A DNA stretch of 64,000 nucleotides, taken from positions 62,001 to 126,000 of the IMG/VR virus record IMGVR_UViG_3300043425_001539; one strand, given 5' to 3'. The notes under the pieces are model-generated. The model ran no database searches. It was not told the DNA's origin and saw only the letters and a list, made by a program, of their open reading frames with translations. How positions within the stretch are numbered: the stretch's first letter is position 1; every line of letters begins with the position of its first letter. This document shows, in pieces, positions 1-22,435 of the stretch. Made by a program: the position numbers and the translations under genes.

Positions 1-1287
1 ATCTTTTGCCCGTTTCATAAATTCATATACTTCCAATTTATCTTCAATAGACATATCACGTGGTTCCATGTGTGGGAGTAATAAACGAATTCTTTCCATC
101 AGAGTTACGTCGTCTGGGTTTACGTCAACCAAAATTGATCTTGAACGAATTGCGCCATCGGGATCCGCTTTATCTTTTGGTAAATTTGATATAAATACAA
201 CTCGTCCTGCAAACTCAAAATAAGCTGGGATCATACCACCTTCAACAGCATTCCATTCTGCCTCAGGATCATTTTCGTAATCTTTAGGATCAAATACTAT
301 AGATGATTTTTTAAGATATGAAATTCTTCTAACCTTTTTAGTGTCAAGCGCAGCTTTTAGGATGTTACGTCCTGTTTCGTCTCTAAACACAGAATCACAA
401 TCATCAAAAACCAAAACTTTATTGCGGTATTGGAACATCTTCTTATACATCATAATTACTGAAACCGCACCGGAAACAATAATGTAATCTTCATCCTCGA
501 CAAGGCCTTCATCTTTTAATGCACGTTCAACACTGAAAGTTTTACCTGTACCTGCTCTACCAGAAATAAACAATGAATTAAATCCACCTGCAGCAAGTCT
601 TCGCGTAATTTCGTAAATGTCTTCAAGAGTTTCGTCCAACAGTTTTACTTTATCTTCCAATAGCATTTCATTACGCTTTACCGCTGGAATTTTTTCTGTG
701 GTTGATGTTACACCCTTTCTTACCTGCAAGATCATTCCGTATGAAATGCCCATACTTTTTGAAATGTCTGCAGCGCTCTCGCCTTGTTCCAATCTTGATT
801 GGATTTCAGATTGTTCATCAGGTGACAAAGGTTTACGTGCTTCATACAAAGAAGATTCAACCAATTTATCAATTGATTTAGCGTAAGATGGATCATTAAT
901 CAATCTTACAAATTCACTTAACAGAGAAACGATTGGAAAATTTTCACTTGATACAGAAAAATCTGCAACTCCAGAATTAGGCTTTGAAAGATATTCCAAA
1001 GTACCTATAATTCCTCTGCGTCCGCCACCATAAATTTTTACGCATGACAAATCCTTATCACTAAACAACATAACAACTGGTGTGTTATGATCATCATATC
1101 CAATAAACGGAAACAAAACGAATGCTTTGCCTGTCTTTTTGTTTAAAAAGGATTTTATAATTTCCGATGCTTGATTTAATTTAGGTTCTATATCAGTCTG
1201 AGACCTTCCTAAATTTTCGTTCATGCTATCAGAAGAATGCAAATCTCCGGAAATAAATTCCTCGAATAGTTGAATGTAATTCTTCAT
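1..1287 (-). CDS. AAA+ ATPase with a putative HTH segment; runs off the window edge (3' end missing)
   Basis: Not in the ORF track; translated by hand from ATG at 1287 (MKNYIQLFEEFISGD...), open to position 1. Walker A SGRAGTGKT, Walker B VLVFDDCD, sensor-like VVFISN. HTH-like GESAADISKSMGISYGMILQV upstream of the ATPase domain. Confidence 0.85.
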   Translation of the reverse strand, partial: MKNYIQLFEEFISGDLHSSDSMNENLGRSQTDIEPKLNQASEIIKSFLNKKTGKAFVLFPFIGYDDHNTPVVMLFSDKDLSCVKIYGGGRRGIIGTLEYLSKPNSGVADFSVSSENFPIVSLLSEFVRLINDPSYAKSIDKLVESSLYEARKPLSPDEQSEIQSRLEQGESAADISKSMGISYGMILQVRKGVTSTTEKIPAVKRNEMLLEDKVKLLDETLEDIYEITRRLAAGGFNSLFISGRAGTGKTFSVERALKDEGLVEDEDYIIVSGAVSVIMMYKKMFQYRNKVLVFDDCDSVFRDETGRNILKAALDTKKVRRISYLKKSSIVFDPKDYENDPEAEWNAVEGGMIPAYFEFAGRVVFISNLPKDKADPDGAIRSRSILVDVNPDDVTLMERIRLLLPHMEPRDMSIEDKLEVYEFMKRAKD

Positions 1288-1307
1288 TTAATTTTTTTTT
1301 ATTTTTA

Positions 1308-1316
1308 TTATATATT
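1308..1316 (-). promoter_or_regulatory. Candidate phage late-promoter motif AATATATAA
   Basis: Intergenic, about 20 nt upstream of the ATG at 1287; one of 12 RATATATA(R) copies upstream of starts. Confidence 0.55.
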
Positions 1317-1335
1317 TTGATTAAAATTTATTTTT

Positions 1336-1659
1336 TTATTTTTTTGGCTTAAACCCCGCGTCTCTTGCCTCTTTTGCTAAATCAGCATCAGCTTTACCCC
1401 AGGTACCTTCACCGCCAGTTAAAAAACTGTTTACTCGTGCATAACCCCATTGCTCCTGTCCTGCTCCAGGTCTATGCCCGCTTTTCCATGCTGCCATGCC
1501 TCTTCGCATAACTGCTCGAATTATTCCGATAGGAGCGCCTGATTCTTCGCTTTTCTTTTTGAGCGCTTTTTCGATATCGGGATTATCAATAGGACTTCTG
1601 TCAGTTGATTGTTGCTTTTCTTCAAGCAGCCAAGATTCATATGTTTTTGTGTATTCCAA
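1336..1659 (-). CDS. Conserved phage protein (DUF5824-like) with CTS-like leader
   Basis: Motif RAVMRRGMAAWKSGHRPGAGQEQWGYARVNSF recalled as typical of this phage family; TTG start, leader MEYTKTYESWLLEE. Confidence 0.7.
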   Translation of the reverse strand: MEYTKTYESWLLEEKQQSTDRSPIDNPDIEKALKKKSEESGAPIGIIRAVMRRGMAAWKSGHRPGAGQEQWGYARVNSFLTGGEGTWGKADADLAKEARDAGFKPKK

Positions 1660-1673
1660 AACAATTATAATTT

Positions 1674-2300
1674 TTATTTGAATTTATGAATTAATCCTAG
1701 AACACCCGAAACGTAATTTGCAGTATCTCTTATTAATTCCTTTTCATCTTCTGTAAATTCGTGAATATCTTTGACAAATTCAACTCCCATTGCCCCGTGT
1801 AATTTGCCAGTTGGGGTTTTTAAAGAAACTATAAATAAAGATTGACAACCCGTTGACTCAGCTGTATCTCTTAATCCAAAGGATTTTTGATTTTCGTCGC
1901 TTATGTCATTTATACATAATTCCTCATTATCATGAATTTCTTTAAGTGCTCGACTAAAAAAACTTGTTGGCACATTTTGAAATTTATCTCTAATAGTAGA
2001 AATACCAATGTTTACTATCTCAAAGAAAAAACTAAATTTTTTAATTGAAACTCCTGATGAATAATAATGTCCTCCATTATGAAACTGCATTATCCATATT
2101 CTGTCACAATCTATTTCACCTAATAAATATGTTAATTGTTCATTGATTAAAATATCCGACTCCATTTCTTCATACATCGGATCTTTTAAAGATTCTTTTC
2201 TTTTAATGTAGGACCTTACATATTCCAAAACCGCTGGGCCGATAACCGCAGTTATCAAGGCAACAATAATTGTAACAATTAATGATGTTTCCATTCTCAA
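1674..2300 (-). CDS. T4 gp t-like holin candidate (one N-terminal TM plus GAF-like domain)
   Basis: TM segment LIVTIIVALITAVIGPAVL, then DRIWIMQFHNGG...SLFIVSL...GAMGVEF, consistent with a GAF fold. Start is TTG 2300 or ATG 2294. Confidence 0.6.
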   Translation of the reverse strand: MRMETSLIVTIIVALITAVIGPAVLEYVRSYIKRKESLKDPMYEEMESDILINEQLTYLLGEIDCDRIWIMQFHNGGHYYSSGVSIKKFSFFFEIVNIGISTIRDKFQNVPTSFFSRALKEIHDNEELCINDISDENQKSFGLRDTAESTGCQSLFIVSLKTPTGKLHGAMGVEFVKDIHEFTEDEKELIRDTANYVSGVLGLIHKFK

Positions 2301-2361
2301 AAACTCTAATAATGTCTAAGACATTATCTCTTTCTTTTTTCATATTTTTATTTTTTCTTAA

Positions 2362-2907: not shown

Positions 2908-2909
2908 AA

Positions 2910-3257
2910 TTACGATATTTGATTCATTATAGCTGAATGCACCCGTGAGCCTAAACCAGATAAACGGTAAGTCTTTGATCCATTCTTTTCAGATATTTTA
3001 AAATATCTAGTGTTTTTATTAATCCATTTTCTGCTGGTGGCCCCACCTGTTTCTTCATTCATACCAGCTATAAATTCCATAAGCTCTTCATGTGTCACTT
3101 CACCTGATTCTTTAACAAATGAAAGAATTTTTTCGCGAATAGGCGCAACTGAAGAAATTTCCATTTTAGGATATTTATCAGTATATCTTCTTTTAATTGT
3201 TAACTTTTCCTCATTAATAAATTCATCAAAAGAAAGCGTATGTCTTTCGTTAGTCAT
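2910..3257 (-). CDS. Hypothetical protein, possible winged helix, with CTS-like leader
   Basis: 115 aa; leader TLSFDEFINEE; helix-helix-strand pattern ending in TYRLSGLG. Confidence 0.6.
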   Translation of the reverse strand: MTNERHTLSFDEFINEEKLTIKRRYTDKYPKMEISSVAPIREKILSFVKESGEVTHEELMEFIAGMNEETGGATSRKWINKNTRYFKISEKNGSKTYRLSGLGSRVHSAIMNQIS

Positions 3258-3280
3258 AAATTAATTTTATTTTTATCTTT

Positions 3281-3291: not shown

Positions 3292-5025
3292 TTAATTATA
3301 AAAAAATTTGTCAAAAGACGATTTAATTTGTGTCCAATAAGGATGTACGCATTCCGGTGTTAAATTCTTAAACTCTTTTAAATTATCTTCAGTTAAACAT
3401 TTTTGCAATTTAGATATTGCTTTATTATTTATTTTTTGAATCTGAACAGGTTTGTTTTCTTTAGAAAAATAAATAGTCTTAAGCCCATCTTGTTCGGATT
3501 TTAGATCATTAAAACTTTGTTCTGTTGCAATGATTACGGGTTCATATTTGGGTCTTAATGAATCCAATATTTTTTTAAAGAAAGGACGATCCATTATTTT
3601 ATAATCTATCAGAAGTTCATCGTTATCTTGTAACAATGAATTAACAATCTTTTCTTTATTGTCTTCATCAGATCCATACATTTTTTCAGCCAAAGAATTG
3701 CTATGTATTAACAAAATTTTGTGGCCATTTAATTTTTTAAGTCTATCAGCTTCCTCAATAACATCTTTTGTCAACAAATTAAAATTTGTTATAATAACAT
3801 TTACCGGTGTTTTTCCAACGGTTTCATTCTTTCTAAGACTAAAAAATCTAGTAAGTAAACTTACAGCTTTAACATAATCCGCAGCCGATTCATCGTTTAA
3901 ATTATTTTCTAAGCTTTCAGTTTTTTCTTCTTTAAGTATTGAAGAAAACTCTAAAAATGAAAAATCGCCTCCAGCTAATTTGTTAATTTCTTCAATTTTT
4001 TCGTTAAAAGAATTTGCTACACTTTCGCTAATTAATCCGCTTTTATATTTAGGCTTTTTAAGATTGGTTAAAAATATAGAATATAAATACTCATAATTTT
4101 TATTATTTTCAAGAATCTCTAAAGTTTTGGGATTTTTAATCCATTTTTTGGATAAATTTCCTGACTTACTTAAAAAATCTGGACGTTTTAATCCAGATTC
4201 TAAAAATTCTTGTCCTTTCTGTACAACATATTCATTAAAAATTTCCGAAACTATTTCAATATAAGATTCATCGGGGTTAGCAGATGAAATTTTAATATTA
4301 TTAATAGGGAATGATTCTAAGTGTTCGCAAATGTTTAATAAAACTACATCAAAAAGATGACTACGAGATTCATTTATAATATCTGTATCCTTGCCTAATT
4401 TGATAAGTTCATTTTCAAATTCAAATATTAATGCTTCAACGTTTCTAAGTTTCTTGTTAAGAAACCCTTGTGTATAAATTTCTGATTCTGTTAATAATAA
4501 ACTGTTATTTCCTATTAAAGAATTAATAGTTTCTTCGGATAATTTTCCTTCAAATACAGGTTTTGCGTAATCAACTTTAAAAAGCTGCGACCATCTTTCA
4601 AAAACCGTAGTATCTTTAACTTCATTAATTACATCAAATTTGTTATTTCTTACAGTAATGTCTGTTAATATTAATCCGTTCTTTGGTGTTTTTTCATATT
4701 CTGTAACCAAAGGCATGTTTGAAGGAAACCAAGAAAACCCAAATCTATGTCTAACAGGTATGGATTTTTTTAATTCGTATGGAAGATTTTCAATATAATC
4801 AATAGCAGACTCATATAAATCACTTATTGTACGATCTATGCGTGATAATGGAACTTTTCCATTTTTTCCGTAAAATTGAAACTTATATGTTTTAGGATTT
4901 TTTTCAAATGAAAACCGAAAAGCATCAAATTTTTCAGTCACGCGCACTTCTTGTGAAAGAATTTGCTTTGCTTTATCCTGACCGTATTTATTTACAAAAG
5001 TGTTAAAATTTTTTATTCCTGCCAT
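3292..5025 (-). CDS. Ligase-like nucleotidyltransferase domain fused to a degenerate HIGH/cytidyltransferase-like domain
   Basis: N-terminal VTEKFDA resembles ligase motif I (KxDG). C-terminal LQKCLTEDNLKEFKNLTPECVHPYWTQIK aligns by eye with VRQALRNDDKALFNELMPKELHKYYDELK of ORF 8495-9076. Confidence 0.6.
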   Translation of the reverse strand: MAGIKNFNTFVNKYGQDKAKQILSQEVRVTEKFDAFRFSFEKNPKTYKFQFYGKNGKVPLSRIDRTISDLYESAIDYIENLPYELKKSIPVRHRFGFSWFPSNMPLVTEYEKTPKNGLILTDITVRNNKFDVINEVKDTTVFERWSQLFKVDYAKPVFEGKLSEETINSLIGNNSLLLTESEIYTQGFLNKKLRNVEALIFEFENELIKLGKDTDIINESRSHLFDVVLLNICEHLESFPINNIKISSANPDESYIEIVSEIFNEYVVQKGQEFLESGLKRPDFLSKSGNLSKKWIKNPKTLEILENNKNYEYLYSIFLTNLKKPKYKSGLISESVANSFNEKIEEINKLAGGDFSFLEFSSILKEEKTESLENNLNDESAADYVKAVSLLTRFFSLRKNETVGKTPVNVIITNFNLLTKDVIEEADRLKKLNGHKILLIHSNSLAEKMYGSDEDNKEKIVNSLLQDNDELLIDYKIMDRPFFKKILDSLRPKYEPVIIATEQSFNDLKSEQDGLKTIYFSKENKPVQIQKINNKAISKLQKCLTEDNLKEFKNLTPECVHPYWTQIKSSFDKFFYN

Positions 5026-6374: not shown

Positions 6375-7384
6375 AGCCCATAACTATTTTTCATTGCTTC
6401 ATATACCGCAGATATTTCAGCATCTGATAACATTCTATTGTAACATAAAACCGCGCCTATTCCTCCATTTGTACATGTGTTGGTATATCCTGTACCTATA
6501 CGAATTTCACCTGCTGGTACTAATGCAGTATTACTTCGGCATAAAAAATCAGCAACCCAAGGTGTACCGTTTTTACTAGAAAAACCTGTTCTACAAGCAG
6601 TAGTTTTTCCCGTTGATAATTTAACAGCCATCATATTCCAAGCATTAGCTGTTGTTTGTGCAATGGCGCCAGTATCGTAGGTAGGAGTCTTTCTGCTATA
6701 ATAACTAAATGCAGAAGTGGTTTCCCATGTTATAGCAAGTTCTTGTTCATATGAAGCATATATAGTTCCAGCTTTTTCAAAAATAGTCTTTCTTACAGCT
6801 CCTTGTGAACCGTACACCCAAAAAATAACTGTACAGTCTCCACCTAAATCAACAAGATTTGAGTTTGTACTACAATTCCAAAAGCCTGAACCATTAAAAG
6901 CAAATCCTGGATAACCTCCCAAAGATTGAAGCGGAGTTAAAGTATTATTGGAATTAAATTTTAATCCTTGTGCTATATCATACCAAGATGTGCTTCCGCT
7001 ATTATAGCTAATTACATTATGAGGCAATAAACACAAAGTTAATCCATCAGTTATAATAGGTTCTATATTAGCGCCTAAAACCATTTTATCATTTTCGGTG
7101 TTAAAATAATTCATACATTCCGAAAAAGTTGTGAATCCCGCACCTGAAATAGAATTTGTTATTCTAATTAGCTCTTCTTCATTAGAAGCAATTCTTATAG
7201 AAGGGCCACCGGATATCCTATTTTGATATACGGCATAACCGCCAGTAGGAGGATCAATTCCATTCCAAAAATTTGTTAAACTAGTCGGGCCTTTTGCTTG
7301 ATCTCCAGTTCCAATATAAAAGTTGCCTTTTTTTAACGCATTTGTTTCAGCAACTTCAGCGCTATATTTAATGGCATTTGGCAT
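6371..7384 (-). CDS. LamG/concanavalin A-like domain virion protein
   Basis: CTVIFWV...WNMMAV...IGAVLCYNRMLSDAEISAVY LamG-type ending. Confidence 0.7.
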   Translation of the reverse strand: MPNAIKYSAEVAETNALKKGNFYIGTGDQAKGPTSLTNFWNGIDPPTGGYAVYQNRISGGPSIRIASNEEELIRITNSISGAGFTTFSECMNYFNTENDKMVLGANIEPIITDGLTLCLLPHNVISYNSGSTSWYDIAQGLKFNSNNTLTPLQSLGGYPGFAFNGSGFWNCSTNSNLVDLGGDCTVIFWVYGSQGAVRKTIFEKAGTIYASYEQELAITWETTSAFSYYSRKTPTYDTGAIAQTTANAWNMMAVKLSTGKTTACRTGFSSKNGTPWVADFLCRSNTALVPAGEIRIGTGYTNTCTNGGIGAVLCYNRMLSDAEISAVYEAMKNSYGL

Positions 7385-8259
7385 TAACTTGGTAAAGGTA
7401 ATTTTGCATCTTCCAATTTATCAAAAAAATCTTGATAAATTTTTTCTCTTGCTTCAGGATATTTAAAAGCTGTAGAATCAATTAAATCTTTAAGCTTTTC
7501 ATATGTATTAATATCATTAGGCGCGTGTTTACCTGTAAATAGCAATTTAACTACTTCTTCGGGAGTATTTGTTATAAATCTATCATAATCTTTTAAAAGT
7601 TGTGCAGTTTTAAGTAATCCTTTTTTACCTTCAAAACTTTTTCTTACTTGCACTATTCCTTGATTTAACCTAACAACATACGATTGAAATTCTGCAGTCT
7701 CTCCGCTTTCAGATTTTTTAGTTACTTCAAAAAAAGATTTTCCAATTGCAGACATTAACAATAAATTTCTGTAAGCTCCTTTATATCTTGATTCAGCAAT
7801 TCTAAAATCAGGTGAATGATATATGAATCTACTCCAGCTTAAATCAGTAGAAAGCATAAAGTCAACTTGTGCGTATCCTTTTGATACAAATCCGCTAACA
7901 GGCGCTGCTATACTTACTTGATTAAAACCAGGCATCAATTTAGTTTGGTACCCAAGTTTTTTAAGTTCGTCATTTAACGCAAAAAGAGCATTTTGCAAAG
8001 GAACTCCAAAAAAACCTGCAATCTTATCAGCCGATACTGCAATGTCAATATCACCGCTTGTCTGATCAGGAAGTTTTTTACCTGCTGAACCTATAAGAGC
8101 AGCATCTTTATCCAAACCTTCTAATCCTATTTTAGGAAATATTTCTTTTGCTATCCATTTTGCAGTTTCAATTACTTCAGTTTGATTAATAGGGCGAACG
8201 TCGTCAACAGCATTTCCACTTTCTTTGATGTATTGCTCAAAAAGTTTAACATATTTCAT
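7384..8259 (-). CDS. DNA Pol-beta-superfamily nucleotidyltransferase with CTS-like leader
   Basis: LIGSAGKK...SGDIDIAV (GS...DxD) and a third Asp in AQVDFML. Start moved to ATG 8259 (MKYVKLFEQYIKE), just after the upstream stop. Confidence 0.8.
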   Translation of the reverse strand: MKYVKLFEQYIKESGNAVDDVRPINQTEVIETAKWIAKEIFPKIGLEGLDKDAALIGSAGKKLPDQTSGDIDIAVSADKIAGFFGVPLQNALFALNDELKKLGYQTKLMPGFNQVSIAAPVSGFVSKGYAQVDFMLSTDLSWSRFIYHSPDFRIAESRYKGAYRNLLLMSAIGKSFFEVTKKSESGETAEFQSYVVRLNQGIVQVRKSFEGKKGLLKTAQLLKDYDRFITNTPEEVVKLLFTGKHAPNDINTYEKLKDLIDSTAFKYPEAREKIYQDFFDKLEDAKLPLPS

Positions 8260-8261: not shown

Positions 8262-8498
8262 TTAAGAATTTGTCTTTATCCATGCTTTAATTGCATCTTC
8301 AGCAGCCTTTCGTAATTTTTCTGTGTCTGCAGGACTAAAATCACCAGATTTTATATCCGAGAAAGAATTAGCAACACTTTCCCAAAAAGCATCAAGAGCA
8401 TCTTCGGCTACTTGACTAATTTTTTGCGAGCTGTAATTAATGCCTTCATCTAATGAGTCCTGATTTAAAAAGTTTTTAAATGTTGTAAAATGTTTCAT
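8262..8498 (-). CDS. Small acidic protein with CTS-like leader
   Basis: 78 aa, MKHFTTFKNFLNQDSLDE; overlaps the upstream stop by 4 nt. Confidence 0.65.
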   Translation of the reverse strand: MKHFTTFKNFLNQDSLDEGINYSSQKISQVAEDALDAFWESVANSFSDIKSGDFSPADTEKLRKAAEDAIKAWIKTNS

Positions 8499-9076
8499 TG
8501 TTTTATGTATTTTTTTAGTTCATCATAATATTTATGCAATTCTTTTGGCATTAATTCATTAAACAAAGCTTTGTCATCATTTCTTAACGCCTGCCTAACT
8601 TTTGTTCCACTTGGTCCATCTCCTTCTCTTGCATCAACCAATCTAACAGAAAAATTAGCATCAACTGGTGTATCAGTTTTAGGACCTGTTATGTATTCAA
8701 CCTGTCTCTGATAATCCTTCATGCGGTCAGCGCCTGCGCCTAATCCTAAAGGTTCATATCCCAATTCTCTGATGTATTGAACCATTAAAGGAATCACAGT
8801 TTTTTTACCTGTAGGATATATTTGAAAATCTTTAATAAAAGAATTGTTACGAACAACATCTCTAGCCATTTTTTGAAGTAAAGTATCAGGAAAAGGCGAT
8901 TCTTCTTTTGCCGATAATATTTGTAATGCAACAACAGGTTTTCCGAAAATTTCTGAAGTTCTCTTTAAGGCGGCTAAATGACCCTTATGAAAAGGCTGAA
9001 ATCTACCAGGAAAAAATACTACCTCATTATTTGAGTTTTCGTTTATAAATGATTCAAATGTTTGAACGTGTCTCAT
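8495..9076 (-). CDS. HIGH-motif nucleotidyltransferase (cytidyltransferase-like/NMNAT-like) with CTS-like leader
   Basis: FPGRFQPFHKGH (HxGH), GAGADR and SGTKVR (KMSKS-equivalent). Confidence 0.85.
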   Translation of the reverse strand: MRHVQTFESFINENSNNEVVFFPGRFQPFHKGHLAALKRTSEIFGKPVVALQILSAKEESPFPDTLLQKMARDVVRNNSFIKDFQIYPTGKKTVIPLMVQYIRELGYEPLGLGAGADRMKDYQRQVEYITGPKTDTPVDANFSVRLVDAREGDGPSGTKVRQALRNDDKALFNELMPKELHKYYDELKKYIKQ

Positions 9077-9092: not shown

Positions 9093-9644
9093 CTATACAG
9101 ATATTTTTTTTGTATCCGTAGATCCTATAAAATCTTTTTTAACCATAACTGTGATAATGACAAAAATCAAATTACCTGAATCATTTTTTAGAGCACCTAT
9201 TATGTTTAAAAAATTTTTATCGTTTCTTATCCAATACTTTTGTCCTATCTCATCAATTCCTTTTAGTTGATTGTTTGCAATTTTAGGTAATGCTTTATTT
9301 ATTTGATCGACTATATCATTATCTTTTATTTCGTTATCATACCCATGTCTAAACTTTCTTATTTCTGCATGTGTCGTGGTATTTAAAATAACTTTCATAG
9401 GAATTGTACTTTTAATTGCTCCGATATTTCTTTCTATCAATTTTTTATTATCTAATCCATCAATAACCGAAAAACTTAACAATTCTTTATACTGATTTTC
9501 CGCTATTAAATTATTATTACATATTGATTTGATGGTTAGCTTTTCATTATTTATTTCAATAAAATCTTCAACTTGATAATTAGAAAAAAATTCAAATGCT
9601 TCTTGATTTTGGATAAATGATTCAAAAGTTTGAACGTACTCCAT
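9093..9644 (-). CDS. Hypothetical protein with CTS-like leader
   Basis: MEYVQTFESFIQNQE; C-terminal HAEIRKFRH...IITVMVKKDF could be a BECR/RelE-like nuclease fold (weak). Confidence 0.6.
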   Translation of the reverse strand: MEYVQTFESFIQNQEAFEFFSNYQVEDFIEINNEKLTIKSICNNNLIAENQYKELLSFSVIDGLDNKKLIERNIGAIKSTIPMKVILNTTTHAEIRKFRHGYDNEIKDNDIVDQINKALPKIANNQLKGIDEIGQKYWIRNDKNFLNIIGALKNDSGNLIFVIITVMVKKDFIGSTDTKKISV

Positions 9645-10219: not shown

Positions 10220-10759
10220 TTACCAAGGCTCATCACTCTGCAAACCCAATTGCTTGCCAAATAATGAGGGAGCATAACAGCTCCAAAACCCAGGTTTGCT
10301 TGGATCCATTCTGGCCTTTGTGTCACATTGCTGTCTTGCCCAAAAACTTGCAGCTGCTTTTGGGTCATCATTTTTTATGCTTAGTCCGCTGGTATCACCC
10401 CATTCAATTTTTGTAGCTAAGATGTTGCCGTCATCATCTTTTTTCCCACTGTTATGATAAACAAAAAATTTCTTGTCTCCGCCTCTTGTAGGAGTATCAA
10501 GTTCAACATCTAATAGTTTGCCATCATCGGATTTAAACTTTGCCTTTTTTCCTACTTCTAAATTTTTTGTCATCCATGCAGCTTTACCTTTCAATATTAT
10601 GTTGCCTTCATCCCAATATTTTTTGGTTTCCTCAAAAAGATTACGATATGCATCACTTCCTAAACGATACACTGAATTAGTTATATCCAAACCGTTTTCC
10701 ATGTGATACCTAAAGCCTTCACTCACAATAAAATCATTAAAATCTTTAACGTATTTCAT
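10220..10759 (-). CDS. Conserved phage protein with SFWARQQC...FWSC motif and CTS-like leader
   Basis: ATG 10759 gives MKYVKDFNDFIVSE. C-terminal DPKAAASFWARQQC...PGFWSC recalls a widespread phage domain of unknown function. Confidence 0.65.
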   Translation of the reverse strand: MKYVKDFNDFIVSEGFRYHMENGLDITNSVYRLGSDAYRNLFEETKKYWDEGNIILKGKAAWMTKNLEVGKKAKFKSDDGKLLDVELDTPTRGGDKKFFVYHNSGKKDDDGNILATKIEWGDTSGLSIKNDDPKAAASFWARQQCDTKARMDPSKPGFWSCYAPSLFGKQLGLQSDEPW

Positions 10760-10790: not shown

Positions 10791-11243
10791 TCACATTCTT
10801 TCTTTTGTAAATTTTACAAGTTTATTTTTTTCAATGTAATCTTCATACAATTTTGCATTCATTAACGGTTCTTCATATACCATAATGTATCCTTCATCTT
10901 CCCAAAATTGTAAAAATTCTGGTATTTTCTTTTCTAATCCACACGTGAGAGAAAAACTGCTGCTAGGAGGGACTACTCCCAAATCTAAAGCAAGCTGTGT
11001 GCGTTTAAATTTGCCTCTTTCTTCAGTAAAAAGTTTAGGGTAATGCAATTCCATTGGCCACGCAATTGATGAATTGTATTTAAGCTCATTATAAAATGTT
11101 ATTGAACAACTTTCAATATTTCGTTTATCACGAGAATAAAGTTTCCACCAGACGTATTTGGCTTTATTATTTTTTCCTTCATTGATTTCAGCATGTTTTC
11201 CGTTTTCTGCTAAATATTTATCAAAATTATATATGTGTTTCAT
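10791..11243 (-). CDS. Hypothetical protein with CTS-like leader
   Basis: Start moved to ATG 11243 (MKHIYNFDKYLAE), 1 nt after the ferritin stop. Confidence 0.6.
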   Translation of the reverse strand: MKHIYNFDKYLAENGKHAEINEGKNNKAKYVWWKLYSRDKRNIESCSITFYNELKYNSSIAWPMELHYPKLFTEERGKFKRTQLALDLGVVPPSSSFSLTCGLEKKIPEFLQFWEDEGYIMVYEEPLMNAKLYEDYIEKNKLVKFTKERM

Positions 11244-11244: not shown

Positions 11245-11838
11245 TTAGAAGTATGTTTGTTCAAAGAAAAGTAATTCAAACGGATTTGACGGATTGACTA
11301 ACTCAAGCGCGTTTAAATAGTCTGAATATTCTTCAACTTCGCCATTTTGGATATCAACGTATTGTTGTATGAAATTAAAGGTAGCAGGATCTAAGCTAAC
11401 CAAAAACTTTTGATTTTCGGAATACGCATTTAATAAGGTTTCCTCAATCATATAAGCTTTGTTAATAATATCAACTAAACCCGAAAAATTAATTGTGGTA
11501 TGTACTTGCGGAATAACAGGTAAAGCATTCCATTGAGTAATGTAATCTTGTAAACCTTTTGCGTGACCCAATTCGCCTTCCGCTTCTTTGTTAAAAAAAT
11601 CAGCAGCCTTTTTATAATTTGCATTTTTACACCAGTTTGCGGCATTTCTGTAAAAGAAATATGCTGTATATTCATCGCCCAATCTTTCATTTAATAATTG
11701 TTCAACTTCAGGCAAAAGTTTTTTAGGTTTAATAGGTAAAACTGTTGAAGACATACCTATAGAGTGAAAAGATTCGTTAACGCCTGAATCCGCGGGTTTT
11801 TTAGATTTTGAACTTCTAAAAGATGAAAAATTTTCCAT
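11245..11838 (-). CDS. Non-heme ferritin (FtnA-like) with N-terminal extension
   Basis: Ferroxidase-like residues in GDEYTAYFFY, EAEGELGHA, YMIEE and DIQNGEVEEY, spaced as in bacterial ferritins. Confidence 0.85.
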   Translation of the reverse strand: MENFSSFRSSKSKKPADSGVNESFHSIGMSSTVLPIKPKKLLPEVEQLLNERLGDEYTAYFFYRNAANWCKNANYKKAADFFNKEAEGELGHAKGLQDYITQWNALPVIPQVHTTINFSGLVDIINKAYMIEETLLNAYSENQKFLVSLDPATFNFIQQYVDIQNGEVEEYSDYLNALELVNPSNPFELLFFEQTYF

Positions 11839-11878: not shown

Positions 11879-12163
11879 TTAATATATTAAGTTTTCCCAG
11901 TTAAACCCTTCACCAAGAAATTCATCATTAAACTTTGTTGAACTTAAAAGATTTCCTTGACTGTCGTATATGTTCCACATAATTACGCCATGTTCATTGG
12001 TGATTTCAATTTTTCTTTCTCCATATTCGGAAACATATGTGGTTGATGCTACATCAGTTGCGTCGTTATATTTCCACCCTAAACTTTTTAGGTCAAGAAC
12101 AAGATCTTGCCATTCAGTATCGGATTCATTAATAAATGTTTTAAAACTATTAATATAATGCAT
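11879..12163 (-). CDS. Hypothetical protein with CTS-like leader
   Basis: Start moved to ATG 12163 (MHYINSFKTFINES), 1 nt after the upstream stop. Confidence 0.6.
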   Translation of the reverse strand: MHYINSFKTFINESDTEWQDLVLDLKSLGWKYNDATDVASTTYVSEYGERKIEITNEHGVIMWNIYDSQGNLLSSTKFNDEFLGEGFNWENLIY

Positions 12164-12643: not shown

Positions 12644-13237
12644 TTATTTTTTTGGTCTGCCTAACATAATTTTATCGTGAACATGCCCTCCAATCGTTCT
12701 GCTATACCATCCATCACCTGAAGCATTATTTTTGGTTCCTATCCAGTTAATTGGTTTACCTAAAATTTTGGCAACCAATTCAGCATCATCAACAACAGGA
12801 ACGTTATATTTATTCATTAAAATTTCCGCAATTTTGCCCGAAACTTCAATGTAATGTCCTAATTTTTTAAGCTCAGTGCCACGCATCTCTAAATACTTTC
12901 TTTTGGATGCGGCATCGCCGTCGTGTCCTACTCCGGAATATTTTATGCCATGCTTTGTCTTTTCTCCAAAAATAATAATATCAAAGTTATTATCATTATG
13001 AATATCAACCCCTTCCCAATAATTCCAATCAGGATCAGAAAAAACATCTTTAGGCGTTTTTACTTTAACGTGTCCTCCTATCTCAGCATATGCAATGGAA
13101 ATTAATTCATAAAATTCATCAGCCAATTCAGGATGTTTTTTAGGATCAAATGTTATAGCTTTATTTCTAACAGGATTAAAAATTTCTCCTGAAGATTTTT
13201 CATTTAAAAAGCTTTCAAATGTTTGAACATATCTCAT
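12644..13237 (-). CDS. Conserved hypothetical protein with CTS-like leader
   Basis: MRYVQTFESFLNEK leader; 197 aa alpha/beta; no firm family assignment. Confidence 0.6.
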   Translation of the reverse strand: MRYVQTFESFLNEKSSGEIFNPVRNKAITFDPKKHPELADEFYELISIAYAEIGGHVKVKTPKDVFSDPDWNYWEGVDIHNDNNFDIIIFGEKTKHGIKYSGVGHDGDAASKRKYLEMRGTELKKLGHYIEVSGKIAEILMNKYNVPVVDDAELVAKILGKPINWIGTKNNASGDGWYSRTIGGHVHDKIMLGRPKK

Positions 13238-13248: not shown

Positions 13249-14988
13249 TTATTTATTATATACAAGAATAGAACGAATTTGATGAAGAGCCGCAAAAATT
13301 CCTGTAAATTTATATAATTTTCCTTTGTATAAAAAAGTTATACCTTCGGTAGGCACAATTGATTCTAATCCGCCGGCCGCCGCAACTCTTTCCAATTCAT
13401 ATTCCATTTTTTTAATTGCGTCTTCTCCGCCTTCCTTGCGGATTTTAGCAATAACACTATCAATTTCTTTTTTCATTTCTTCAGCTGCTTTAGTTGGATT
13501 TGCTGATAGAAACGAAGAAACATTTTTCATTACTTCGGTGCCTAATTCCAAAAATATTGATTCAAGCGGAAGATATACTCTTTTTTTTAATTCTTTTTCG
13601 CGAGTCTTTTCTAAATTAATAAACCATTCGGAAACGTTTACTGCTAAATTCTTTTTAATATTAGCAACTGTAAATGACTTATCTATGCCTGCTATCCTCT
13701 TTCCAAGCGCATCTAAATATTCATCAGGTATATCAATATTATCTCTTTTAGCAAGATCCTGTAGCATCCTTTTTGCATTGCCTAAAGCGTATTCTTCAAC
13801 GCTCGAAGAAAGATTAGTACCGCTTTCTTTCATTATTTTATTTAATAAAGAATAGTAGTATGCTTCCCTTGATTTGGTATTAGGCAAAGGTTGTAATGAA
13901 ATATCTTGAGGTCCTCTTACATAAAACATTTCTTGCGCAGCAGCATTTGCATCAGCAATTAATTTACCTAAATCTCTGCCAGCCTGTTTATCTTCGCCAA
14001 TAGGGTTTCCATTTTCATCATATTCAATAACTCCATGAAATACCAACATATTTTGTCCATAAGGTACAGTATTTTGTGTAACTGGAGTTATAATTTCAAC
14101 GCTTGCAAATTTTCTTCCGTTTGCAAAATATTTTTCTTTGATGGCATTGCTTAACGATCCTACAGAAGAATTCAAGTCTTTCATTGCGGCAACAAACGCA
14201 ATTTCTATGTCGCCTCTTCCCGCAAACATATTGGCAATTCCTTTTATTGTCAAAGAATCTTGCCCAAAATTTTTAATATGACTTTTATTACGAGCTGCTC
14301 TAATTTCTCCGTCCTTCCATGATATTGATAGCTGCTGGCCGTCTGTGTTATGAACCAATATGCCATTAGCAAAATATCTATGATTATTACCTACTGTTAA
14401 ATCATAACATTTTTCGGTAGATACAATTTTACGAATTGATTTTACTTTTGATCTTTTGCTTAAATTTTCGGTATCCCGCAAATCTTTTTTCCAGACAGTT
14501 AAAACTTCATCACCTTCTTTTATTTCGTCAGCTCTTAGGTCAAACCCGTTAACATAAATTCTATGATTCGGCGTAGTTCTAATAATTTGTCCGTCTTCGG
14601 TTTCTATTTCAATCCATTCTGTTGCTTCTTCATTTTCAACCCAATCCATAATTGGTTGATATGAAATTTCTCCTAATTCATTGGATGTTAAAATATCATC
14701 TTCAATTTTTGATTCTACTAAATCTTTAATTGAAATTAATCCTTTTGATTTTAAAGAAACGATAGTATCTCCGGACAAACATTTCTCTTGTGTAAAATTT
14801 TCAGGTCCAAAAGAGCCATTCACCGCAGCACTTATCATATCCTTTATATCCTGCATTGATAAATCAATATCCTCAAAAGGATGCGAGAGGTGCCCGTAAG
14901 CACCTCCTTCATTTATTTTATCATTAACATTAAAGTTTGCTATACGGCTTTCTTGAATAAGAAATTCTTTATATTTTAAAAAAGTCAT
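13249..14988 (-). CDS. Ligase-like (KxDG) nucleotidyltransferase-fold protein containing a mini-intein; CTS-like leader
   Basis: After intein removal it reads GGAYGHLSHPFED...FTQEK-TDGQQLSISWKDGEIRAARNK, with ASVEII and LVFHG as further ligase-like motifs; 434 aa when spliced. Confidence 0.75.
   Translation of the reverse strand: MTFLKYKEFLIQESRIANFNVNDKINEGGAYGHLSHPFEDIDLSMQDIKDMISAAVNGSFGPENFTQEKCLSGDTIVSLKSKGLISIKDLVESKIEDDILTSNELGEISYQPIMDWVENEEATEWIEIETEDGQIIRTTPNHRIYVNGFDLRADEIKEGDEVLTVWKKDLRDTENLSKRSKVKSIRKIVSTEKCYDLTVGNNHRYFANGILVHNTDGQQLSISWKDGEIRAARNKSHIKNFGQDSLTIKGIANMFAGRGDIEIAFVAAMKDLNSSVGSLSNAIKEKYFANGRKFASVEIITPVTQNTVPYGQNMLVFHGVIEYDENGNPIGEDKQAGRDLGKLIADANAAAQEMFYVRGPQDISLQPLPNTKSREAYYYSLLNKIMKESGTNLSSSVEEYALGNAKRMLQDLAKRDNIDIPDEYLDALGKRIAGIDKSFTVANIKKNLAVNVSEWFINLEKTREKELKKRVYLPLESIFLELGTEVMKNVSSFLSANPTKAAEEMKKEIDSVIAKIRKEGGEDAIKKMEYELERVAAAGGLESIVPTEGITFLYKGKLYKFTGIFAALHQIRSILVYNK
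14347..14781 (-). mobile_element. Mini-intein, 145 aa, no homing endonuclease
   Basis: Block A CLSGDT, block B TTPNH, block F CYDLTV, block G YFANGILVHN followed by Thr as the +1 nucleophile. Confidence 0.92.
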
Positions 14989-15704: not shown

Positions 15705-16073
15705 TTATGCAGTTGTTCCGTAATGATTATCTTCATTTCCGAAATATTTTTTGGTTTCTTCTGTTAATGTTTTAATTGTTTCCTTAACTGTTTCGCCGAC
15801 AGAATCAGCAAGCATTTCAACAATATCTGAACTTATTCGCAATTTTTTATCAAGAGCATACACATACGTGGAAATACATTTATTAATTGTATTTCTTGCT
15901 TGTTTGTCATCGGTTTTGGCAAAATATACATCAAGTAATTTCCGCCTAAACCCTTCAACCGTTTCATCAGAATGGTTAACCGAAACTTCTTGTGGGCTAT
16001 TAGTTTTCATAACCCGACCAGACAAGTTTGTGCCTTTTTTTCCTTCAGCCAAAAAATCTTTATATAGTAACAT
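15705..16073 (-). CDS. Hypothetical protein with CTS-like leader
   Basis: MLLYKDFLAEG, very close to the T4 IPII/IPIII leader MKTYQEFIAE. Confidence 0.65.
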   Translation of the reverse strand: MLLYKDFLAEGKKGTNLSGRVMKTNSPQEVSVNHSDETVEGFRRKLLDVYFAKTDDKQARNTINKCISTYVYALDKKLRISSDIVEMLADSVGETVKETIKTLTEETKKYFGNEDNHYGTTA

Positions 16074-19008: not shown

Positions 19009-20113
19009 CGTATTTATCGTTGGAAAAATAGTTTGCCAATCTTGGTATTGAGATGTTTTTTCTTTTTGCCAAGACGACAAGGTCTGTGAGGTCCATTTTT
19101 TTATTTGTCGGTTCATCGATATTTGCTTCTTTAAAAAATTTCTTCCATAAAAATACAGGCTTGCCTTCTTTTAGGCGTTTAATTGAGGCTTCTTTACCCG
19201 CTTTATCAAAATCATACAAATATCTTAAAGATGATAAATCAATCGGAACATCAATATTTGACGAACAAGTAGCTATCGAATTTTTATATAAAAAAGAATC
19301 TAAAGGTCCTTCAAACACCGTAATAGGCAATGATAAATCCACATTAAGTAAACCAAAAATAGTTGACATTGGATCAACTTCTTCTACTTCATGTGTTACA
19401 GTTTTTCCAAAAATTTCGTATATTTTGCTTAATCTAAATGTCATATACTTAGGATATGTTTTAAAATTTCTAATCTGAAAACCTAAAACTTGATTGGTAT
19501 TAGGAATCAGATTAAAAATGTAAAGTTGTTCTTTTTCTTTACTCCAAGAAAAAATATCCATGTTTGGCTGCAACCTTTTAATTAAATAAGTTGCTATTGG
19601 AGATTTATCAATTCTTTTTAATTTAAACTTGTCCTCAATTATATTCCTATCAACAGCTAAAGTTTTTAATTTTTCTATGTCAAATAAGTAAGAAGGGTCT
19701 AATTGAATAATTTCCTTTTTTGTACTTTCCTCAGCATCTTTGATGTAAAGCATCTCATCAACGCTAAACACATCTTTTTTGAAGTCCTTTAAGAATTTAT
19801 AAACATCAGTGTATTTTCCACAATTATAACACTTAAAATATAATTTATCAATATAAATATTTCCGCGTTTTTTATGTGTATCAACGCTACTGTCTCCACA
19901 ATAAGGACATGCAAAATTTAAACGCCCAGCTTTATTATAAATTATTCTCTTTTCACTGTGTGCATGGTTGCTGTTTAAAATTTCCTGTAAAGAAACTTTA
20001 ATCTTTTCAATAATTTGTTGAGGATTAACAGCAACTGAATCTTTATCATAAGAAAAAGAGAATGAGGTTTTACCCCCATTCTCTCCGTTTTCATTTGAAT
20101 TAAAGTGATGCAT
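18992..20113 (-). CDS. gp61: DNA primase (T4 gp61-like)
   Basis: Zn finger CPYCGDS...CYNCG, Toprim VFEGPLDS and YDFD. Start moved to ATG 20113 because the longer ORF lies inside gp32. Confidence 0.88.
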   Translation of the reverse strand: MHHFNSNENGENGGKTSFSFSYDKDSVAVNPQQIIEKIKVSLQEILNSNHAHSEKRIIYNKAGRLNFACPYCGDSSVDTHKKRGNIYIDKLYFKCYNCGKYTDVYKFLKDFKKDVFSVDEMLYIKDAEESTKKEIIQLDPSYLFDIEKLKTLAVDRNIIEDKFKLKRIDKSPIATYLIKRLQPNMDIFSWSKEKEQLYIFNLIPNTNQVLGFQIRNFKTYPKYMTFRLSKIYEIFGKTVTHEVEEVDPMSTIFGLLNVDLSLPITVFEGPLDSFLYKNSIATCSSNIDVPIDLSSLRYLYDFDKAGKEASIKRLKEGKPVFLWKKFFKEANIDEPTNKKMDLTDLVVLAKRKNISIPRLANYFSNDKYDAYWI

Positions 20114-21035
20114 AAAGGTCATCATCAAAAGAATTTGGGTCAAAATCATCAGAATCATCGAGTATTGATGATGTTTCAACAGCCGCAGGTTTTGGTTTAG
20201 TCGGCGCGGACGGCAAAACAAAATCATCATTGCTTTCAGAGATTGCTGATGTAGTTTTTCGATTGTTTTTTTCCACGGATTCAATCATACGGCCACCTGG
20301 GACAGTGTTTCTGATAACTTGATTGACAAAATCTTCGGTTGCTTGATCCCAATCTTGATAATCATAAGCACTTAGATCAGGAGATTCGTCAAGATATGAT
20401 TTAATTTTATTAAAGCATTCTTGAGTTTTTTCCATTTTTTCTCCATCTATGGTAAGCGGCATTTTTTCATCCAAAAAACGACAATTATCATAGTTATTAT
20501 AACCTGCTACTTGCGTAATGTGAACAAGAAATGGCTTTCCTTCAAAAAGATCAAAAGGAATGTGTGGTTTTCCAAATTCTGGCTTCATTTCAGCCTGTAA
20601 TTTGTTGTAAATTTTGACTCCATAAGGCCACACCATAATTTTACCAACCATTTCAGGATTGTTGTCATCTTTGATGATTTGAACCAATGAAGCAAATCGT
20701 TGCCTGCGAGAAAAATTTTCGGCTAATTTTTGTTCAGCAACAGAATCAGACTTTTTAAATTTCCAATAAAAATCTTGGATAATTGACTTTTTACCAACAG
20801 TGGAAGGGCAGTCAACCATTTTTCCTTCATTATTAGCTGGATCAACCAACCAACATGACCATTTTTTCATTACCGATTTTTTTGCATCCTTATGCCAAGG
20901 AATAAATCGAACTACTGCTTTGTAAACTCCATCTTTACCAGATTTTGAATCAGGTTTAAAAATTAAAGATTGTTTACGTTCGGGCTCTTTGAAGTCATCG
21001 AGCGAAAGATTAAAGATGTCATTAAGATTCTCCAT
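20100..21035 (-). CDS. gp32: Single-stranded DNA-binding protein (T4 gp32-like)
   Basis: YKAVVRFIP, IIKDDNNPEMVGKIMVWPYGVKIY, FDLFEGKPF, GYNNYD and an acidic C-tail. Confidence 0.9.
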   Translation of the reverse strand: MENLNDIFNLSLDDFKEPERKQSLIFKPDSKSGKDGVYKAVVRFIPWHKDAKKSVMKKWSCWLVDPANNEGKMVDCPSTVGKKSIIQDFYWKFKKSDSVAEQKLAENFSRRQRFASLVQIIKDDNNPEMVGKIMVWPYGVKIYNKLQAEMKPEFGKPHIPFDLFEGKPFLVHITQVAGYNNYDNCRFLDEKMPLTIDGEKMEKTQECFNKIKSYLDESPDLSAYDYQDWDQATEDFVNQVIRNTVPGGRMIESVEKNNRKTTSAISESNDDFVLPSAPTKPKPAAVETSSILDDSDDFDPNSFDDDLYASL

Positions 21036-21098
21036 TTTACTTTAGATTTATTTTAGTTTGTTTTAAGTTTACATTAAGACGCCTTAAGTGAATTCAAT

Positions 21099-21107
21099 TT
21101 ATATATT
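21099..21107 (-). promoter_or_regulatory. Candidate promoter motif AATATATAA
   Basis: Intergenic, 63 nt upstream of the gp32 ATG. Confidence 0.5.
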
Positions 21108-21120
21108 CACGAACAAAACA

Positions 21121-21441
21121 TTAGTTTTGTACTTCATTAATATTTTTTTGTACTTCTTCTAAGACTAAATTTTTTGCTTCCTCTAAAGAGATATTTAAAC
21201 GTTCACTTAAGTCTTTATAAAAATTATTTTCTTGCTGTGTTACATATTGCATTTTTGCAACAATGATATTCATATCATCTTCGGCATTTCTAATTTGAGC
21301 ACCTACTTTACTTGCCTCGGCATAAATTTTTCTTAGTTGCTCAAGTAATTCGGATATTTTTTGAATTTCATCCTGCGACAGCTTAGAAGATTTGTAATTT
21401 ATCATTGGCTCAGGTGTAATTAAATCTTTATTAGTTTCCAT
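21121..21441 (-). CDS. Coiled-coil hypothetical protein
   Basis: Start moved to ATG 21441 (METNKDL) to avoid overlap; heptad pattern. Confidence 0.6.
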   Translation of the reverse strand: METNKDLITPEPMINYKSSKLSQDEIQKISELLEQLRKIYAEASKVGAQIRNAEDDMNIIVAKMQYVTQQENNFYKDLSERLNISLEEAKNLVLEEVQKNINEVQN

Positions 21442-21467
21442 ATTATACTTATTATATACAAATTGTT

Positions 21468-22106
21468 TTAAATAGTTTTGTGATGCGCTTCGATTGTTTT
21501 TAATACCCAATATGAATCAACGATATCATCAAGAGGTTTAAGCCAGGCACCTTTTTTATTTTGAAATTTTTCAGGATTTTCTTTTAAAGATTTATGTAAA
21601 GATGTATTAATCAAGAATGCATCGGTAGAATTAATAAATGCTTCTATCATATTTTCTTTTTTAAAGTTTCCTTTGCCAGCTGTTGATTTAACGGTCATAG
21701 GCGAATATACATTAAAATTCTCAATATCCAAACCATTTTTAATTAACTCCCATCGCAAAACCCATTGATATCCACTTATTTGTGCAAGACGGTTTCCAGT
21801 GGATGCAAAAGAGAATCCTTCTATACCCCATTCTTTAATAGGTATTCCTGCAAAACAATTTGTTATTTGTGGAATTAATAATAAAGCATCTTTTACAGAT
21901 GTTCGTTCTCTTTCACCTATTGAAGCTTTTTTATGCGGAGCAGCTTCTTCGTCTGATTCAAATAATAAAACCTCCGCATCTAAAAATGCTTGTTTATCTT
22001 TTTCTTTAATTATGCCATTTCTTGCATAAGAATAAAAATTATAAGAATTTTCGGTTTTGAGAGTTGCGGCTGCTGATTTGATTGAAAAGTCAATCCCTAA
22101 AATCAT
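21468..22106 (-). CDS. RuvC-like (RNase H fold) Holliday junction resolvase
   Basis: MILGIDFS, WGIEGFSF, K-x-x-AGKGN-x-K and DDIVDSY acidic motifs. Confidence 0.8.
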   Translation of the reverse strand: MILGIDFSIKSAAATLKTENSYNFYSYARNGIIKEKDKQAFLDAEVLLFESDEEAAPHKKASIGERERTSVKDALLLIPQITNCFAGIPIKEWGIEGFSFASTGNRLAQISGYQWVLRWELIKNGLDIENFNVYSPMTVKSTAGKGNFKKENMIEAFINSTDAFLINTSLHKSLKENPEKFQNKKGAWLKPLDDIVDSYWVLKTIEAHHKTI

Positions 22107-22435
22107 TTATTCATATTGTTTTGTATAGCATTGCCTAATGCGGCTGATACCAAGCGTGATGTAAACATATCATATAAAATTCCTTTTTCAATACCTAGTG
22201 CTCTTGCAACAACCCTACCTATTGAAGGCCCTACTAAATACCCTAACGCTGCACCAAAAATACCTTCACTTATTGCTTTCTCTAATCCGGGTATTCCTTC
22301 TTTGTCAACAATTTCATTTAATTTTTTTTCAAAATTGCCAACCTCTATGATTTGATCTTCATCAAGTTCATAAATTTCGATTTGTTCAATCTTTGGAGGG
22401 TTTCTAAATTCTTTAAAACTTTTCATTTTAATCAA
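22103..22435 (-). CDS. Hypothetical protein with CTS-like leader and Gly-rich hydrophobic helices
   Basis: MKSFKEF start; GIFGAALGYLVGPSIG segment. Confidence 0.6.
   Translation of the reverse strand: MIKMKSFKEFRNPPKIEQIEIYELDEDQIIEVGNFEKKLNEIVDKEGIPGLEKAISEGIFGAALGYLVGPSIGRVVARALGIEKGILYDMFTSRLVSAALGNAIQNNMNK

Follow-up and report, generated by a model that had tools for sequence, protein, structure and literature searches.

A shared N-terminal leader resembling the T4 capsid-targeting signal on unrelated proteins of a huge uncultured phage

In bacteriophage T4, a capsid targeting sequence is carried by the internal proteins IPI, IPII and IPIII (and by the propeptides of Alt and gp24). These are short N-terminal propeptides which direct otherwise unrelated proteins into the prohead and are removed by the gp21 prohead protease, and in T4 both packaging and cleavage have been shown experimentally. 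The gp21 protease cuts at I/LxE sites (PMC12991175), as in the signal MKTYQEFIAE/A of T4 (NC_000866; here and below a slash follows the Glu of a known or inferred site). In giant phages of the phiKZ type (phiKZ, 201phi2-1, SPN3US), large heads are loaded with many different inner-body and ejection proteins, and a gp21-related protease cuts after Glu, and multiple sites occur in propeptides (PMC5694885). Most of those propeptides, however, are long (79 to more than 160 residues, although one is 20), the site is S/A/G-x-E, and paralogue families dominate. Encapsulin cargo-loading peptides may offer an analogy in how such a system works, in that short terminal peptides direct diverse enzymes into an HK97-fold shell, but they are usually C-terminal, appear to bind the shell protein directly without being cut off, act in cellular compartments and seem to have no sequence similarity to the leader described here.

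Here we examine a leader shared by proteins in a 64,000-nucleotide stretch of DNA (the window), which is 100% identical to parts of the 238-kb IMG/VR contig IMGVR_UViG_3300043425_001539. The contig belongs to a huge phage related to LR756500, Lak, Mahaphage and Tenacibaculum PTm1, that is, to a clade whose cultured members mostly infect Bacteroidota, and not to the Straboviridae. A first-pass annotation had proposed that about 15 unrelated proteins carry a T4-like capsid-targeting leader, and that the phage loads enzymes (an ATPase and nucleotidyltransferases) into its head for delivery at infection. We determine whether the leader is real, how widely it occurs, and whether the phage encodes the head proteins that such a system would require.

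All 15 N-termini were confirmed (Table 1). Thirteen of them fit one pattern, M-[KR]-[HY]-[VI]-x-x-F-[ENK]-x-[FY]-[IL]-x-E, or the shorter T4-like form at 16073, and two, at 5025 and 22426, are weak, the latter having only the first half of the motif. Five of the starts (8259, 10759, 11243, 12163 and 22426) are internal ATGs of longer open reading frames. Orthologues on other contigs start exactly at the leader, which supports the chosen starts for the first four, but no orthologue of 22426 was found.

Table 1. Leader-bearing and related features on the minus strand of the window, with the protease domain found in L179, the head module of the same contig outside the window.
Position	Strand	Leader or motif	Length (aa)	Description and support
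1..1287	-	MKNYIQLFEEFISG		Leader protein (leader codons 1249-1287); P-loop/AAA-like with an HTH (AAA_16 and HTH_38, both below the Pfam cut-off; phrog_1250); runs off the left end of the window
1336..1659	-	xEYTKTYESWLLEE		Leader protein, TTG start; DUF5824 family; DUF5824 orthologues on other contigs carry clear leaders
2910..3257	-	MTNERHTLSFDEFINEE	115	Leader protein, leader shifted by 4 residues; orthologues read MSHVKSYNEFLNEALVVVKRKYTE and similar; 16.7 bits with a profile built from nine other leaders of the window
3292..5025	-	MAGIKNFNTFVNKY	577	Weak member, no Glu at the end of the motif; 9.4 bits with the window leader profile; no PDB relative
7384..8259	-	MKYVKLFEQYIKE	291	Leader protein; Pol-beta-type nucleotidyltransferase motif (GS...DIDIAV) read by eye only; no family or PDB hit; orthologues start at the leader
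8262..8498	-	MKHFTTFKNFLNQ	78	Leader protein
8495..9076	-	MRHVQTFESFINE/N		Leader protein, cytidylyltransferase-like enzyme (PF01467, 31.8 bits against a cut-off of 21, domain from residue 21); leader precedes the first strand of the Rossmann fold
9093..9644	-	MEYVQTFESFIQNQE	183	Leader protein
10220..10759	-	MKYVKDFNDFIVSE	179	Leader protein; orthologues at two other loci
10791..11243	-	MKHIYNFDKYLAE/N	150	Leader protein
11245..11838	-	MENFSSF...GVNE/SF		Possible extra member; ferritin-like protein with a 46-residue N-terminal extension (Ferritin domain from residue 47); leader assignment inferred
11879..12163	-	MHYINSFKTFINE/S	94	Leader protein
12644..13237	-	MRYVQTFESFLNE/K	197	Leader protein; homologues in Mahaphage and pT24 align only from residue 23 or 37 onward
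13249..14988	-	MTFLKYKEFLIQE/S	579	Leader protein, interrupted by a mini-intein at residues about 66-215 (Intein_splicing, Hint; PDB inteins); extein junction K-T-D-G by our reading
15705..16073	-	MLLYKDFLAE/G	122	Leader protein, 10-residue form closest to the T4 signal
22103..22426	-	MKSFKEFRNPP	107	Weak member, next to the structural genes; resembles T4 IPI (MKTFKEFTST)
L179 3577-5445	-			Peptidase_S77 (PF03420), 47.1 bits against a cut-off of 27

Chance is excluded as the source of this pattern. A loose 5-residue core lies within the first 12 positions in 15 of 53 genes, against 1.6 expected from its internal frequency (Poisson P=2e-10), and it is present in 14 of 31 genes at 1-22.4 kb against 1 of 22 elsewhere (Fisher P=0.0015). 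The one case elsewhere (47549) lacks the Glu and looks like chance. As the first-pass annotation noted for replication, repair and tail genes, the helicase, nuclease, primase, SSB-like, RuvC, PhoH, PNK and exonuclease genes and every tail or baseplate gene lack the leader. Conservation is in the protein and not in the DNA: the upstream DNA is not conserved, and identical residues share a codon in 63-77% of pairs, close to the roughly 63% expected from codon bias. Selection therefore acts on the peptide.

The leader is not confined to this phage. A pattern search of IMG/VR found it on 209 distinct proteins at 59 loci from about 45 contigs, with up to 13 per 14 kb, and the four positions left free in the search pattern came back as K-H/Y-I/V/L-Q/K/H. 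The overall consensus is MKHIxTFESFLNE, and an alignment of 142 leader proteins gives MKHIKTFExFLNE and then nothing, with 5% mean column identity. [ILVMF]-x-E/D formed part of the pattern used to select 179 leaders; among these, the acidic residue is at residue 13 in 158 of 179, the next residue is S, A or G in 114 of 179, and a second [LIVM]NE follows within 10 residues in 23 of 179. Among 185,579 cellular genomes, none has the leader at an N-terminus. In the case of the cytidylyltransferase-like protein, 100 of 120 homologues match the leader pattern and most of the rest are shifted variants. An AF2 model of this protein predicts a confident enzyme fold (pLDDT above 90) preceded by a leader of low confidence (residues 1-10, pLDDT 54) with a helix at residues 7-15.

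The head genes of this phage lie on the same contig, outside the window. L179 encodes a Gp23-family capsid protein (E=3e-38) and a T4 gp21-type (S77) prohead protease, in which the equivalents of the catalytic His85 and Ser140 of T4 gp21 are invariant in the protease alignment and the protease domain is followed by [KR][IV]NE/[SA]. The protease is fused to a scaffold which holds nine repeats of Y-x-x-Y-[LIV]-x-E, the pattern of the leader, at exact 14-residue spacing. The capsid protein has MNLLNE/S and HSLNE/G within its first 43 residues, against a background of 0.58 such sites per 1000 residues, although these LNE sites do not align with the gp23 cleavage site of T4. Relatives of this group are reported to carry the gp20 portal and the S77 protease (PMC7824862), and in head modules of the clade leader genes sit between the scaffold and capsid genes or just after the capsid gene.

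To compare the leader with the T4 signal directly, we built a profile only from the metagenomic leaders. With this profile the T4 IPII/IPIII signal TYQEFIAEA scores 16.6 bits, above all 19,079 internal 9-mers of the window proteome (maximum 15.5). The T4 gp23 cleavage site scores 8.2 bits (top 0.016%) and the scaffold repeats fall in the top 0.04-0.6%. Leader and scaffold repeat share a pattern but not a sequence, however (F/F/N against Y/Y/A), and the residue after the scaffold Glu is mostly Lys rather than a small residue. Across loci, the link between repeat number and leader density is weak and confounded by relatedness (Spearman 0.36).

Every test that could be run favoured a leader of the T4 type, as the first-pass annotation had proposed. 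Like the T4 signal, it is a short N-terminal peptide on otherwise unrelated proteins, with the core aromatic-x-x-aromatic-aliphatic-x-Glu (YQEFIAE/A in T4, FESF[IL]NE/[SAG] here) and an [IL]-x-E ending. It differs from T4 in that at least 30 tagged genes occur in the sampled 110 kb or so, far more than the three internal proteins of T4, in that protease and scaffold are fused and the scaffold carries tandem copies of the motif, and in that the cargo includes recognisable enzymes. No leader protein gave an internal-protein family in the Pfam or PHROGs scans, and so we do not regard the cargo as homologues of the T4 internal proteins. Of the enzymes named in the first-pass annotation, only the cytidylyltransferase-like protein passes the Pfam threshold. 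The leader also does not fit the phiKZ type of propeptide, as it is 13 residues long, has I, L or V where those sites have S, A or G, and sits on unrelated carriers.

Our preferred explanation, to which we would give a probability of about 0.6 in the absence of a virion proteome, N-terminal sequence or expression-timing data for any leader-bearing phage, is that the 13-residue leader is a capsid-targeting propeptide. Because its amphipathic core has the pattern of the scaffold repeat, leader-bearing proteins would be taken into the scaffold core while the prohead assembles. The S77 protease would then cut after the Glu, at [LIV]-x-E followed by a small residue, at the same time as it cuts the scaffold at its nine repeats and trims the capsid protein, and the mature proteins would stay in the head with the DNA and enter the host at infection. 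The cargo is a varied, fast-evolving set of small proteins and enzymes, which suggests a pre-loaded counter-defence and take-over kit, and some of it fits entry or counter-defence roles (a 2H/Acb1-like phosphoesterase, cREC_REC, DHH, GH108, SLT and Tlde1/YkuD). Some cargo, however, would be expected to act in the cytoplasm, namely RNA-repair-type or nucleotidyl-transfer enzymes and a ferritin-like protein. The cultured relatives which we scanned, PTm1 (100 kb), MaF61 (43 kb) and pT24 (12 kb), have no leaders, and the PTm1 scaffold also has no repeats.

It is possible, but unlikely, that the leader is a short amphipathic helix that sends proteins elsewhere, to the membrane, a replication compartment, or a phage chaperone or protease that controls their stability, and that its likeness to the T4 signal and scaffold repeats is convergence of simple amphipathic peptides. 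The leader is indeed predicted as a short helix detached from the domain, many cargo proteins look like cytoplasmic enzymes, and cultured relatives with the same S77 protease have no leaders. This reading does not explain the fixed length with Glu at residue 13, the small residue after it, the duplicated LNE, the nine matching repeats in the scaffold, the leader genes inside head modules, or the top-ranking score of the T4 signal.

Slightly less likely still is that the leader proteins enter the prohead and are cut, but that most act as accessory core or scaffold components, setting head size or filling volume, and are then degraded or expelled like the scaffold. The T4 core proteins gp67 and gp68 behave in this way (PMC5694885), the motif is shared with the scaffold repeats, and charged, helical leader proteins sit in head modules. 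Many leader proteins are, however, folded enzymes with a single N-terminal site and no further strong sites, and their gene sets differ widely between related phages, which is unexpected for assembly parts. A role in expression (an A/U-rich, unstructured start region or favourable nascent peptide in a host group lacking Shine-Dalgarno sites) or in cassette shuffling by recombination is the most doubtful, since although the codons are A/T-rich, no Shine-Dalgarno sequence is visible upstream, the genes lie in arrays of small variable open reading frames, and signal-coding DNA may help to swap internal-protein genes in T-even phages, the upstream DNA is not conserved, synonymous codons vary about as much as codon bias predicts, the retention of F7, F10 and E13 is not explained by base composition, and the capsid protein and other structural genes, which should be highly expressed, lack the leader.

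More tentatively, the tag may work by mimicking the scaffold, each cargo protein carrying one copy of the scaffold's own repeat unit and co-assembling with the nine-repeat scaffold, so that one protease specificity frees the cargo and dismantles the scaffold together. This would let a huge uncultured phage clade load dozens of interchangeable enzymes and anti-defence proteins into the head as a pre-made proteome, and would provide a portable address tag for HK97-type shells beyond T4. The scaffold-repeat match suggests how the T4 signal is recognised, which appears to be still unresolved, and it yields a simple sequence rule for predicting ejected proteins and a candidate packaging tag for engineering.

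If the preferred explanation is correct, capsid-targeting tags are not a T4 peculiarity but would be an old feature of gp21/gp23-type heads, expanded in one huge-phage clade into a general loading system for dozens of proteins. Hundreds of unannotated metagenomic open reading frames would then become predicted virion-delivered proteins, some of them likely counter-defence enzymes that act before any phage gene is expressed.

Nearly all genes in the window lie on the minus strand, GC content is about 31%, and no Shine-Dalgarno sequences are visible. A 1205-aa structural protein from the window and the phage's capsid protein each match the same 31 phage records, which comprise the Lak phages, the 462-735 kb uncultured phages LR756500-LR756504 and LR745206, Tenacibaculum PTm1, PTm5 and pT24, Sphingomonas PAU, Chryseobacterium MA9V and Flavobacterium MaF61. 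At the nucleotide level, a megablast search of positions 1-22.5 kb against phage records found nothing. Three loci from IMG/VR are 100% identical to the window, and the window is therefore part of IMGVR_UViG_3300043425_001539 (238,475 bp), which is also represented by a 136-kb contig. A 4.7-kb piece of this phage is binned in a public genome assembly (NCBI GCA_046046115.1, JBJOKM010000063.1), which might hint at the host or might be a binning artefact.

All 15 N-termini are where the first-pass annotation placed them. Thirteen fit the pattern M-[KR]-[HY]-[VI]-x-x-F-x-x-[FY]-[IL]-x-E or a shorter T4-like form, while the genes at 5025 and 22426 are partial matches. A loose 5-residue core is N-terminal in 15 of 53 genes against 1.6 expected (P=2e-10), and it occurs in 14 of 31 genes to the left of 22.4 kb but in 1 of 22 to the right. 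Replication, repair and tail genes lack it. A DNA-level cassette was rejected, as the upstream DNA is unrelated between genes and identical leader residues use the same codon in 63-77% of pairs, about what codon bias alone gives; the conservation is in the peptide. A TATATAA motif, with 23 copies on the coding strand against 12 on the other, is a candidate promoter element, but it is found upstream of genes with and without the leader and says nothing about timing. The regions of the window and the individual features discussed here are collected in the table.

Coordinates of window regions and of individual features in the window and in related loci
Sequence	Position	Strand	Feature
Window	1-16 kb		Small and medium genes of mostly unknown function
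Window	16-22 kb		Helicase, PD-(D/E)XK-like nuclease, primase-like and SSB-like genes and a RuvC-like gene, assigned by reading their translations and not by a family search
Window	22.4-64 kb		Tail, baseplate and neck genes plus PhoH, PNK, an exonuclease and a homing endonuclease
Window	5088-6221 and 6371-7384	-	Two Laminin_G_3 / ConA-like lectin-fold proteins without a leader, in the middle of the leader gene cluster
Window	13249-14988	-	Leader protein interrupted by a mini-intein (about residues 66-215)
Window	18817-20284	-	Primase-like ORF (18992-20284) overlapping its neighbours on both sides; its listed TTG start lies inside the 20100-21035 gene and its 3' end overlaps ORF 18817-19116, leaving the real start, or a frameshift, unresolved
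Window	26054-31774	-	1906-aa tail-fibre-like protein starting with collagen-like G-x-y repeats (GGGPQGIRGNQGLPGLPGRKGETG...)
Window	e.g. 1314, 3287, 13262, 16083, 46894, 47570, 63929	-	TATATAA, 10-35 nt upstream of many start codons
L179 (head-module locus, same 238-kb contig, outside the window)	3577-5445	-	Prohead protease and scaffold as one ORF
L179	11175-11774	-	2H-phosphoesterase with a sub-threshold Acb1 (anti-CBASS) Pfam hit and a leader-like KLFEEFIALFE near its start
L023 (same phage, outside the window)	927-3823 and 7719-8330	-	Five paralogous proteins, each carrying the leader
L034 (related contig)	7967-10399		Large terminase with a second intein
L001 (LR756501, 735-kb phage)	852, 3545, 6528		Diverged leader-like N-termini (MPLFDFKTYVNEAK, MGVINYQQYLIKEAD, ...YKIFEADE)

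To determine how widely the leader occurs, we searched IMG/VR with a degenerate DNA pattern for M-x4-TFESF-[ILFM]-NE, which returned 59 loci from about 45 contigs; a tblastn search with a 20-residue leader had been too insensitive to be useful. The four free positions came back almost always as K-H/Y-I/V/L-Q/K/H. A relaxed pattern finds 209 distinct leader proteins in those loci, up to 13 in 14 kb, and an alignment of 142 of them has the consensus MKHIKTFExFLNE and then no conservation. Glu falls at residue 13 in 158 of 179 leaders, the next residue is S, A or G in 114 of 179, and a second [LIVM]NE follows within ten residues in 23 of 179. In contrast, the same DNA pattern finds only two places in 185,579 species genomes, both of which lie inside a bacterial protein and not at an N-terminus. 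Among the papers searched, none contains the leader strings, and a search for capsid-targeting literature beyond T4, P1 and SPN3US found no prior description.

Extending outward from the window gave baseplate and small genes, including three more leader genes, but no head genes. The head module was reached instead with a degenerate DNA pattern for a conserved capsid-protein block, which retrieved the locus L179 from the 238-kb contig. Two head genes lie on its minus strand. The first encodes a Gp23-family capsid protein (E=3e-38), and the second a 623-aa protein whose N-terminal part is Peptidase_S77, the T4 gp21 family (47.1 bits against a cut-off of 27). The catalytic His and Ser of T4 gp21 are invariant in the alignment (residue numbers from PMC12991175). 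The C-terminal scaffold part of the second protein holds nine repeats at exact 14-residue spacing, each of which reads Y-x-x-Y-[LIV]-x-E, for example IKYSEYVAEK. In relatives, an internal Met (MADKGIQYSNYVAEN...) could give a separate scaffold product, as in nested protease/scaffold genes. Right after the protease domain the clade conserves [KR][IV]NE|[SA]. The capsid protein starts MNLLNE|S and has HSLNE|G at residues 39-44, and related capsid proteins conserve QLINE|[AS] and LNE|[SN] at the same places, against a background rate of 0.58 such sites per 1000 residues.

Further leader genes flank the head module, including those for a LicD-family protein and a 2H/Acb1-like phosphoesterase, the latter a candidate pre-loaded counter-defence enzyme. 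In relatives, leader genes sit between the scaffold and capsid genes or directly after the capsid gene; the leader-like gene just after the capsid gene is not a capsid paralogue like T4 gp24. Counting the window, L179, L023 and L089 (a further sampled locus), this phage has at least 30 leader genes in about 110 kb sampled.

For comparison, the T4 sequences were read from NC_000866. IPII and IPIII start MKTYQEFIAE|A, IPI starts MKTFKEFTST, and the gp23 sequence around residue 65 reads AFGSFLTE|AE, where cleavage probably falls after Glu65. With a profile built only from IMG/VR leaders of other phages, the T4 signal scored 16.6 bits, above all 19,079 internal 9-mers of the window proteome (maximum 15.5), the gp23 site scored 8.2 bits (top 0.016%), and the nine scaffold repeats fell in the top 0.04-0.6%. 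T4 gp21 cuts after Glu in I/LxE (PMC12991175), and the T4 signal directs proteins into the scaffold core and is then removed (PMC5694885). Jumbo phages of the group containing Lak and PTm1 are reported to carry the gp20 portal and the S77 protease (PMC7824862).

Most leader proteins have no known family, and PDB and PHROGs searches did not identify the 291-aa, the 577-aa and most of the small leader proteins. In the window, the recognisable ones are a cytidylyltransferase-like enzyme, DUF5824, a P-loop plus HTH protein (weak hits), and the protein interrupted by a mini-intein, in which the flanking residues would join to read K-T-D-G, resembling the motif I of ligases and nucleotidyltransferases. 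Across the contigs, the families seen are DUF285 repeat proteins, PAP2, ATP-grasp, GNAT, cREC_REC, DHH, GH108, SLT and Tlde1/YkuD. Pfam found five DUF285 members among the scanned leader proteins (best E=4e-108), which we take to be the five paralogues of L023. Of the 120 homologues found for the cytidylyltransferase-like protein, 100 match the leader pattern and most of the other 20 carry shifted variants. The AF2 model of this protein is confident from residue 21 on, and it shows the leader as a low-confidence short helix in front of the first strand.

The simplest account is a T4-type targeting propeptide that is cut by the S77 protease, with the scaffold repeats as the likely partner or fellow substrate, although nothing here shows packaging, cleavage or ejection. 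The proposal of the first-pass annotation, that these leaders resemble the T4 capsid-targeting sequence and mark a candidate enzyme payload packaged in the virion and injected, is supported by independent indirect evidence. Some observations do not favour this account. The cultured relatives scanned, PTm1 (100 kb), pT24 (12 kb) and MaF61 (43 kb), lack clear leaders, and the PTm1 scaffold also has no repeats. Leader and scaffold repeat share a pattern rather than a sequence, and the capsid-protein sites do not align with the cleavage site of T4. Scaffold repeat number against leader density across 69 loci gave only a weak, phylogeny-confounded correlation (Spearman 0.36), on which we do not rely. 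Three other explanations are less probable but remain open, namely that the helix has another destination, that the leader proteins are core proteins acting only in assembly, and, least likely, that the leader has a role in expression or recombination.

On this account, the logic of the T4 targeting signal, which is already known, is found in a different, uncultured clade of huge phages, where it operates at a much larger scale, with enzyme cargo, and with a scaffold built from the same motif. The Mahaphage relative LR756501 has diverged leader-like N-termini, and the system may reach beyond the LR756500-like subclade.
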